Shown one piece after another: positions 26,301-29,114 of a stretch of 64,000 bases of DNA. The notes below the pieces were generated by a model. It ran no database searches. It was not told the origin of the DNA and worked only from the letters and a program-made list of their open reading frames with translations. Made by a program: the position numbers and the translations under genes. How positions within the stretch are numbered: position 1 is the stretch's first letter; every line of letters starts with the position of its first letter. Source of the stretch: Phallusia mammillata (lineage: Eukaryota); the NCBI GenBank assembly GCA_965637545.1, contig OZ281500.1:6758001-6822000 (forward strand). The letters run 5' to 3'.

Positions 26301-29114
26301 TTCTAAGACTTTTTGTTGTATATATTTTTTTGTACTTAGATCATGTTGCCACTTCAGCAATTCATGACCGTTGCTCTCCCACAAACAAAGGAAAAACTCA
26401 ATGAGGGATCTCAGACTGTTCACGACCCTTTTCCTGATCCTACAATACATATTGTTGGATTCAATGACGTAGTAAGAAATCAGTACAAACGCCAGTGTTT
26501 AAAAAATACTCTAACATCACAATGATCAAATATTTTTGTGGGTCTTGTAATTTTATCGCAGAAATTTTCATAGTTTTTGGGACCAAGCCACATGGTGATA
26601 AAACGCAGTGAATGTGTTTCTTTGCTCTCGTTTTAAAACTTCTGTTTCTGACAGGTTGAGATTTTGCCTTCGCTGCAGAGACCAAAGAAAATAACGATTC
26701 GAGCAAGTGACGGAAGTTCTCGAATTTTCCTCTGCAAACCCAAAGACGATTTGCGTAAAGACGCCAGACTCACCGAGTTTGCGGCGATTGTTAACAAATG
26801 CCTGAAGCGCGACCCAGAATCGGGTAGAAGACAACTTCGCATCAGAACATATGTGAGCTTATAAGTTGTATGAGTGTGTGAATCTTTTCAAGCGTTTAAA
26901 CTTTAACACTATACCAGTGGTTTCCAAACGTTTTTGCTTTTTGCTAACATCCCTAAAGTCATTTATGTCTCTTTTGGTTTTCATATACTTATAAAAATTG
27001 GAAAGTAACCTTTAGATAAAGAGGTTAGTGGCCTTCTAATGACAAAAAAACAAATGTGTAAATAGATAACTACAGTTTTGAGCAAAGTAGGCCAAATTAT
27101 CCCGCGATATGAACCAGTGCACTATACTTTACACTTTTTTGTACAAAACAAAAACAAATTTACCGTGTTCTCTTCATACAAACTGCAACGTCCAATTTAT
27201 ACCCTACTTTGCAACTAATGCCACTGTGTAACACGTGACAAACGATGCTTAGGCTGTGATTCCTCTGAATGAAGAATGTGGGTTAATCGAGTGGGTAAAC
27301 GGGGTTCTCCCCTTGAGATCCATACTTCTACAACTTTACCGCCAACGCCGAACTCTCGTATCCAATCGCGAACTATTTGGCTGGGTTCAACCCAAACACG
27401 CCTCGCTACAGTTGAGTGACGCCACGTGTGTGTTACGTCACTCCACACGAATTTTTGCACGTTGCTGTGTTTTAACACTGTTTTGTACTTTTTGACGTCA
27501 AATATTTTGTAACGTCATCGATATGTTTTTGCGCCGCACAGGCGGTGGTTCCCCTCAACGAGGAATGTGGACTTATCGAGTGGGTAAGCGACATGAAGGG
27601 GTTGCGGCCGATTCTGCTTCCAATCTACAAGGCAAGAGGGCTTTACACTTCAGGAAAACAGCTAAGAGCTTGGCAGTTGCCAGTTTCTGAAACTCTAAAG
27701 TACGTTCTCTTCATATTTCTAACAAGCTAGTAGAAAGTAATTGGTGTGATTGACCTTATTGTGTGTGTTTTCTAAAATCACTTTGCTGTGGTTGCGGTTT
27801 TCACTTTTTTGTGATCTTTGTACTGTAACTTGAGTGCGAACTGCTTTTTTCTCATCACGGTGTTTTTTTGCAGAAAAAAGTTGGACGTGTACAGGAACAA
27901 GCTTCTGGCACGTCATCCTCCAGTTTTCTACGAGTGGTTTCTTTCCACATTCCCTGACCCGAGTGCTTGGTACAACTCAAAACTCGCCTATGCAAGATCA
28001 GTTGCCGTAATGTCCATGGTAAGCAGCCGAGTTTATTACCCTTAACATTAGGTTACTGGAGATGACTGTTTCCACAAAAGAGTGGAGGCTTGGAATTACG
28101 ACCCAAGCTTAACCCTAGGAATCTCAGTTAATATGAGCTGTGGTGCATGGTTTGACATTGACATTTTTTCGTCGCAGGTCGGTTACATTCTCGGTCTTGG
28201 TGATAGGCATGGTGAAAACATTTTGTTCGACTCCAATAGCGGCGAGGCAATGCACGTTGACTTCAACTGCTTATTTAACAAGGTAAAAAAGCATACAAGT
28301 GTTAAACTATATTCTTAGGCACCAAAGCACAAGGTTAACGTAAGTTGCTTAAATTTCGGTATTTGTATTGTAACATCTCATCACAGGGCATGACTCTTGA
28401 AGTACCAGAAATTGTTCCCTTCCGTCTTACCCACAACATGGTCGACGCTATGGGTCCTACGAAATACGAGGGTTTCTTTCGTCGCGCGTGTGAGGTCACA
28501 ATGAACGTGTTACGAGAACAGAGGGAGCCTCTTATGAGGTAACATACTTGTATATCAAGAATACTTGGAAAGTCATTACCGATCATGTCACTCTTTATGT
28601 AGAGATCATGTCCCACTCTTTATCACACAGATGTATTGTGGTTATATTGCCGTATAAATCTTGTATGCTAATACTTTGTTCATTTGTGTATGACAGTGTG
28701 CTGAAGACGTTTATTCACGATCCACTGGTGGAATGGAGTAAAAAGGGACGTGGTGGTGCAAGCTCCTTTGATGAAAACTCAGGCGAGGTGGTCAATGAAA
28801 AGGCGCTATCGCATATGAACGATATAGACAAACGATTACGCGGCATTGTGGCAAAGAGCAAAGGACTTCCTCTATCTATTGAAGGACATGTTCACTACCT
28901 AATACAGGTAACTCTTTTGTTACAAAAAGGAAATATATTTTTTGGGGACGAAAGTATTTTTAAAAGGTTTGATTTTAAACTAGTCATTATCTAGGAGCTA
29001 AATTGTTGTTGTATTCTGATACTAAACATAAGTAAAAGTTGTTTGTGTTTGCAGGAAGCAACTGACGAAGAAAAATTGTGTCAGATGTATATCGGATGGG
29101 CTCCCTTTATGTAA
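14303..29114 (+). CDS. ATR: ATR serine/threonine kinase (PIKK family), multi-exon
   Basis: HEAT region including a ~1.85-kb exon (ORF 15737-17632); FAT exons ([25 protein letters not shown]); kinase [43 protein letters not shown]; FATC end [19 protein letters not shown] at 29114. The N-terminal exons are less certain. Confidence 0.95.
22542..22911. mobile_element. Degenerate hAT-like MITE in an ATR intron
   Basis: Ends CAATGATGCAC / GTGCATACCTA (TAGGGATGCAC-type TIR), internal TTCGG/CCGAA repeats, and a 6/8 TSD (TTTTTCTC / GTTTTCAC). Confidence 0.55.
27253..27410 (+). CDS. ATR: ATR kinase-domain alternative exon A (divergent duplicate)
   Basis: 158 nt with AG/GT flanks. Encodes [52 protein letters not shown], with the same length and phases as exon B. 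Confidence 0.8.
27542..27699 (+). CDS. ATR: ATR kinase-domain alternative exon B (canonical-like)
   Basis: 158 nt. Encodes [52 protein letters not shown] and retains the vertebrate-type GLRPIL. Confidence 0.92.

Follow-up and report, generated by a model that had tools for sequence, protein, structure and literature searches.

ATR is a single-copy, essential DNA-damage checkpoint kinase and a drug target, and its catalytic core is treated as invariant. The locus described here raises the question of whether one ATR gene can encode that core in two versions. It lies in a 64,000-nt stretch of the genome of the ascidian Phallusia mammillata (contig OZ281500.1 of assembly GCA_965637545.1, positions 6,758,001 to 6,822,000 of the forward strand; hereafter the window, with positions counted from its first letter), where two homologous exons, A and B, stand side by side in an ATR gene. 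With a probability of roughly 0.85, they are a tandem-duplicated, mutually exclusive exon pair within a single ATR gene, which gives rise to two in-frame forms. In every assembled mRNA path, the upstream constitutive exon is joined to one 158-nt exon, either A or B, and this in turn to the downstream constitutive exon, which yields two full-length ATR forms; these differ at 26 of 52 residues, in the segment equivalent to residues 2366-2417 of human ATR.

The host gene is a multi-exon gene on the + strand that extends over approximately 14.4-29.2 kb of the window, and the exon pair sits in its kinase-domain part. Pfam domains were detected along the open stretches of the gene as HEAT (19616-19876), FAT (22913-23188 and 23810-24058) and, 3' of both, PI3_PI4_kinase (26652-26861 and 28052-28315), the match in the upstream exon having an E value of 4e-4. 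This domain order, HEAT, FAT and PI3_PI4_kinase, is that of a PI3K-related kinase (PIKK) of the ATR/Mec1 branch. The Pfam scan of a 645-aa exon of the gene gave no UME or other hit, and the last exon is FATC-like by eye. Among solved structures, the best match of both exons is human ATR, to which exon B aligns with E 1.7e-14 and exon A with 2.3e-9; exon A then matches Mec1 and SMG1, at E 0.18 and above, and the only other match of exon B is an unrelated protein (E 0.29).

Both exons are entered in phase 0, left in phase 2 and open in frame 0 only. They align without gaps and are identical at 80/158 nucleotides and 26/52 amino acids, including a 12-residue peptide near the start that is the same in both. 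A tblastn search of the window with either exon recovers its partner (E 2e-13) and no further copy. Human ATR residues 2366-2417 align to both exons, with 40.3 bits for A and 56.1 bits for B. Recomputation of coordinates and frames bore out the original prediction, made from the letters of the window, of two homologous 158-nt exons of phase 0 in and 2 out separated by a 131-nt intron. Of the joint positions it had proposed, the start of the downstream exon at 27874 stood, and the end of the upstream exon moved from 26851 to 26852 (TAT/GTGAGC).

Evidence that both exons are spliced into mRNA comes from sequencing runs. When runs were searched with positions 27253-27699, 20 came back, all of one organism and spread over six studies; 0.32, 0.60-0.62 or 0.84 of 50 sampled words were present in them, and the contigs of four of these runs (X1, X5, X16 and X17) were compared with positions 26100-28700. 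In X5, one contig of 1436 nt crosses seven exons with the joints 26852>27253 and 27410>27874 and includes exon A but not exon B. Both X1 and X17 show an assembly bubble of two 215-nt contigs, one with exon A and one with exon B, flanked by 28-29 nt of identical upstream and downstream exons. The depth of the exon A contig is 12.3 in X1 and 8.6 in X17, that of the exon B contig is 6.95 and 6.66, respectively, and their sum is close to the depth of the downstream contig (20.3 in X1 and 14 in X17). All four joints, 26852>27253, 27410>27874, 26852>27542 and 27699>27874, have GT..AG borders. No contig with both exons or with neither was found in X1, X17 and X5, which come from three studies, although rare forms drop out of contigs. 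The expectation of one exon per transcript thus agrees with the contigs of three studies, which join A or B and never both. The coordinates are collected in Table 1.

Table 1. The exon pair, candidate RNA structures around it and the homologous exons of related loci. Positions are those of the window; a slash marks a splice site; X1, X5 and X17 are sequencing runs.
Feature	Position or source	Strand	Remarks
Upstream constitutive exon	26655..26852	+	ends ...RIRTY, phase 0; donor GTGAGC; contig joints in X1, X17, X5
Upstream-intron stem arms	27128..27195	+	27141-27150 pairs with 27479-27488; 27182-27195 pairs with 27455-27468; low confidence
Exon A, divergent and predominant	27253..27410	+	acceptor CTTAG/G, donor CA/GTTGAG; joints in X1, X17, X5
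A-B intron	27411..27541	+	131 nt; separate removal (joint 27410>27542) in no contig
Candidate hairpin holding the exon A donor	27411..27446	+	GUUGAGUGACG ... CGUCACUCCAC; inverted-repeat search
Partner stem arms in the A-B intron	27455..27488	+	include one copy of the T-rich motif
Exon B, ancestral-type and variably used	27542..27699	+	acceptor CACAG/G, donor AA/GTACGT; joints in X1, X17
Downstream constitutive exon	27874..28018	+	ends ...AVMSM; contig joints and translation
L001	JGI contig		one homologous exon, of B type; 81% identity with B
L006	554-kb ENA contig		one homologous exon, of B type; 75% identity with B
L008	Tara		one homologous exon, of B type; 61% identity with B across 41 aa
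L007	Tara		homologous exon 3838-3966; contig stops within the exon

The relative use of the two exons can be read from the same word counts. Among the 50 sampled words, X5, with exon A only and no differing letters, has 16 (0.32), and runs with both exons and likewise no differing letters have 31 (0.62). Exon B thus accounts for 15 words, and 0.30 would be expected of a run with exon B only. The ten single-exon runs (studies P2, P3 and P4) all have 0.32 and therefore contain exon A alone, and no run with exon B only was present among the runs examined by word arithmetic. Exon A makes up 56-64% of the depth where both exons were assembled and apparently more than about 85% elsewhere, and the A:B ratio varies between studies. 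Exon A is the default form and exon B the variable one. The addition of exon B in some sample sets only suggests a regulated choice.

The reading frame gives a reason why the two exons would be used in alternation. Since 158 is not divisible by three, early stops arise in mRNAs that contain both exons and in those that lack both: joining A to B produces stops within exon B, in line with the frame shift that had been claimed for double inclusion, and skipping both produces a stop in the next exon. Such mRNAs would be removed by nonsense-mediated decay, leaving only the either/or products as protein. On the evidence of the sequence, the frame should at least enforce exclusivity, and it is the sole mechanism visible there.

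Exon A appears to be no recent or idle copy. Over the first 15 codons (the AV[I/V]... hinge strand), A and B differ by seven synonymous codons and one replacement codon (I/V), which corresponds to a nonsynonymous divergence (dN) of 0.06 and a synonymous divergence (dS) of about 1.9, with P = 2e-4 if changes were random. A neutral 52-codon stretch of the local intron composition would stay open with P of about 0.03. Judged by its codons, exon A is old and constrained, having long been kept by selection; the saturated synonymous sites and the 7:1 ratio of codon differences uphold what had been proposed for it.

The segment exchanged between the two forms was located by alignment, in which exon position n corresponds to human ATR residue 2365+n. 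The EWV hinge (human Trp2379-Val2380) is identical in A and B. An exchange of the hinge region had been predicted; the rim of the ATP site is indeed swapped, but EWV itself is untouched and the exchange starts right after it. The next five residues, the lower hinge, read NNTAG in human ATR, SDMKG in exon B and NGVLP in exon A. In L001, L006, L007 and L008, as in B, human Gly2385 is retained, whereas A has Pro at this position. At exon positions 21-52, a helical hydrophobic pattern, LR.IL..[LI]Y ... L ... W..P....L, is kept in both exons, and most other residues differ.

According to a review of ATR inhibitors, these stack on Trp2379 and form a hydrogen bond with the 'unique' Gly2385, and their selectivity arises from non-conserved residues of the lower hinge and the ribose pocket (PMC12013171). 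In this part of the C-lobe, all PIKKs carry a helical insertion, the LST8-binding element (LBE), and the substrate groove is enclosed by LBE, PRD and FATC; in Mec1 the LBE shifts by about 8 Å on activation and has been proposed to act as a gate (PMC9523049, PMC6796912). From the alignment and this literature, the lower hinge and the following helices leading into the LBE gate would be replaced between A and B. If the mTOR hinge lies at Val2240 and its LBE at about 2258-2296, as we take them to do, the LBE would begin near exon position 33.

Four tunicate-like ATR loci, L001, L006, L007 and L008, were reached through short open reading frame (ORF) calls (Table 1). All are distant relatives, and synonymous sites are saturated in every comparison, that of A with B included. 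A dating of the duplication from dS was discarded, every comparison being saturated. The pair was not found to be kept in L001, L006 and L008, and these three ascidian-like loci without exon A indicate that A is either lineage-restricted or lost elsewhere. Exon B, with its higher human ATR score and its likeness to the single exon of the relatives, is by sequence comparison the ancestral type. In a tree of the 52 residues, B groups with L001, L006 and L008 (support 83/87) and A falls outside; a tree that makes A and B sisters is rejected by a narrow margin only (p-AU 0.0425). As the tree has 52 columns and one fast branch, it was not used to date the duplication or to choose between an old duplication followed by losses and a lineage-specific one with rapid change thereafter. 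The single homologous exon of L007, a planktonic tunicate-like ATR, reads ...LYKKRNLSVSNQELKA, with 'VSN.EL' as in exon A (LVSNREL) and 'KGLR' as in exon B, and the end of its contig within the exon leaves room for a second copy.

Several points weigh against the interpretation of the pair as mutually exclusive exons of one ATR gene. The RNA evidence consists of assembled contigs and not of raw reads, so depths are rough, and double inclusion or skipping is possible. The runs are labelled 'RNA?' only, by guess; the intron-free GT..AG joints in their contigs identify X1, X5 and X17 as transcripts. X1 and X17 share two single-nucleotide polymorphisms (SNPs) and similar depth ratios and are perhaps not fully independent. 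The two ATR protein forms are predicted from transcripts, and the overlap of the swapped segment with the LBE is predicted from the alignment and from mTOR coordinates. Finally, tblastn and sensitive blastn detected no A-like remnant in the flanking introns of L001, L006 and L008, nor in 12 kb of L006.

What the two forms do can be proposed tentatively. Form A may be a lineage-specific, fast-evolved housekeeping kinase and form B the ancestral version used only in certain stages or tissues, the two differing in nucleotide handling, substrate gating or activator response; such differences would follow from the proposed exchange of the lower hinge and of the start of the LBE gate. The attribution of these particular roles falls short of even odds, and a functional divergence of the A and B kinases as such is plausible on sequence grounds. 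A competing explanation accepts that the splicing is real and holds that forms A and B do not differ in catalysis, substrate gating or regulation, the pair being kept by drift or by a splitting of expression. In its favour, both forms retain the hydrophobic pattern and align over all 52 residues without a gap, their net charge is similar, the EWV hinge and PLNEECG peptide are identical, and three other ascidian-like genomes manage with a single exon. However, half of the residues differ, including the lower-hinge change from Gly to Pro at the inhibitor-contact position of human ATR, both copies have stayed open and spliceable beyond synonymous saturation, and the A:B ratio differs across studies. 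Equivalence of the two forms is, in our judgement, rather unlikely.

Far less probable is the explanation that one exon is a non-functional pseudo-exon and its inclusion splicing noise. Suspicion would fall on exon A, whose acceptor is poor in pyrimidines (40% over the final 15 nt) and whose GTTGAG donor is weak, and which is absent from the relatives examined. The original prediction had itself voiced doubt about exon A on account of this donor, a doubt that is now reversed: A is the predominant form, the majority or sole one in every transcript set examined, and B is the exon that varies between runs. Two signs of a decayed exon A had been named beforehand; a lack of transcripts with A did not appear, A being present in every set, and absence from orthologous loci did, in three loci. 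Exon B in turn is the conserved ancestral type, both exons keep the frame, and their hinge peptide is under strong purifying selection. The pseudo-exon explanation is close to refuted.

It remains to consider whether the assembly has placed the two exons in tandem by mistake. Run X16 is a DNA run, since its contigs include introns. In it, exon A shares an unbranched contig with the upstream exons, as exon B does with the downstream exons, and the two contigs end 7 nt apart, at 27480-27486 in the A-B intron, at a palindromic TTTTGTAC (TGTTTTGTAC) stretch; this is probably a break in the assembly graph and no structural difference. That A and B are alleles, paralogous genes or two misplaced haplotypes, as this failure to bridge the exons and the high polymorphism of ascidians might suggest, is scarcely credible and was rejected, because their DNA is only about 50% identical with unrelated flanking introns, X16 shows a single break where an allelic bubble would require two branch points, the RNA bubbles have identical flanks and the window holds no third copy. 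Around the pair, X16 differs from the window by seven SNPs and one 2-nt deletion in 705 intronic bases (window 26853-27873), and exons A and B, 316 bases in all, carry no variant; this fits constraint, with counts too small for significance.

The tandem-duplicated, mutually exclusive pair in ATR can be compared with exon pairs of other kinases. In human, substitutions derived from tandem exon duplication are known in MAPK8/JNK1, in MAPK14/p38-alpha and in the C-terminal pair of PRKCB (PMC8373072, PMC9741552). As in MAPK8, MAPK14 and PRKCB, the ATR pair consists of adjacent exons of equal length and phase, of which one is used per mRNA and which swap a segment of the kinase, with the remainder of the protein unchanged. 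Those three are classical protein kinases, whereas ATR is a PI3K-related kinase, and the human events are mostly ancient, unlike the ATR pair, which was not found in three other ascidian-like loci. ATR is not mentioned in the two human catalogues of such exon events (PMC8373072, PMC9741552). A literature search gave no paper that describes alternative exons of the catalytic domain for ATR, for another PI3K-related kinase or in this species. Splice variation of vertebrate ATR, likewise alternative splicing of the ATR pre-mRNA, consists of exon skipping outside the catalytic cleft or is disease-causing (Seckel). Among the known vertebrate ATR splice events, we know of no swap of homologous exons in the kinase domain.

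A second comparison is with the LBE of other PIKKs, the LST8-binding element of mTOR and the 'gate' helix K-alpha-4a of Mec1, for the swapped segment of ATR appears to run into the same part of the C-lobe. The LBE is fixed in all described PIKKs; here, if the overlap is correct, its start and the lower hinge are encoded in two versions. Should the two-catalytic-version interpretation be true, ATR would provide the first case among PI3K-related kinases of a natural isoform switch that affects the active site. The kind of splicing event is familiar, and its location, at the rim of the active site of an essential PI3K-related kinase, is unexpected. The exon pair amounts to a natural experiment on two elements, the lower hinge and the helices that lead up to the LBE gate, whose residues are those behind ATR inhibitor selectivity and those that move on Mec1 activation. 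It is also an unusual outcome for a duplicated exon that the derived copy serves as default and the ancestral copy is the variable one. Ascidian embryos are a model in which morpholinos and mRNA injection are routine.

Beyond the frame, several means of controlling the choice between A and B were considered. Steric hindrance, as between exons 2 and 3 of alpha-tropomyosin, is unlikely given the 131-nt intron and a branch-like TGTAAC site about 30 nt before the exon B acceptor; this site, read from the sequence as a predicted branch point, lies about 100 nt from the exon A donor. An incompatibility of U12-type sites, as in JNK, was dismissed, as the three donors GTGAGC, GTTGAG and GTACGT include none with the RTATCCTT consensus. 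Hairpins that mask donors are a known means of tuning exon use, and the candidate hairpin at the exon A donor (Table 1) has a dG of -16.2 kcal/mol and a z score of -1.78, with 7/200 shuffled sequences folding equally well; neither the exon B donor nor that of the upstream exon is structured. This hairpin around the weak exon A donor is the preferred candidate for the switch and might steer the A/B choice.

A looping-out of exon A by intron pairing, of the docking/selector type known from Dscam exon 6, was also considered. Two nested, weak, AT-rich stems, one of 10 bp perfect pairing and one of 14 nt at 86%, would together loop out exon A. Both are present in the minimum free energy and centroid folds, the z score of the region is only -1.66, and the 2-nt deletion in X16 falls at 27148, inside one stem. 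This mechanism is given low confidence. In the same introns, a T-rich motif, TTTACACTTTTTTGTAC, recurs with variants at 27128-27144, 27472-27488 and 27798-27814, that is, 70-125 nt 5' of three successive acceptors, those of exon A, exon B and the downstream exon. A second block of 15 nt is common to the introns after A (27458-27472) and after B (27779-27793). These repeats suggest either that the duplicated unit included the downstream intron or that the introns share a splicing signal.

Other searches for relatives contributed the following. A word search with exon A returned only three short ORFs, one of which led to L001; as it gave no self match, short transcript contigs are not in that collection. 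The word search with the 645-aa ATR exon gave no match. An exhaustive search of representatives with the same exon gave one ORF of 643 aa, and the contigs reached from it (L003-L005) carry an ATR orthologue and stop about half-way along the gene, before the kinase exons. A scan of JGI metagenome contigs with exon A gave 12 loci that match only the conserved first 29-42 residues; most are without the intron and look like fungi or other eukaryotes. Other matches of a search with the upstream exon have different intron positions and are not tunicates. A further eukaryotic locus, L002:579-6250 (Logan SRR33756608), is a compact ATR gene of about 6 kb with few introns beside an AICARFT/IMPCHase gene, and its exon reads WVPNVVVLRSIL, resembling LRSIL of exon A.

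Elsewhere in the window, an uninterrupted frame of 576 aa with an RGG/GYG-rich start occupies positions 11370-13097 on the - strand. By eye, it resembles a DEAD-box helicase of the DDX5/17 type, and it may be a gene without introns that lies immediately upstream of ATR on the opposite strand. At 48207-52627, several frames on both strands share the motif LEWLE.PYD..YYMGEGP..., which suggests a small tandem cluster of glutathione S-transferase-like genes.

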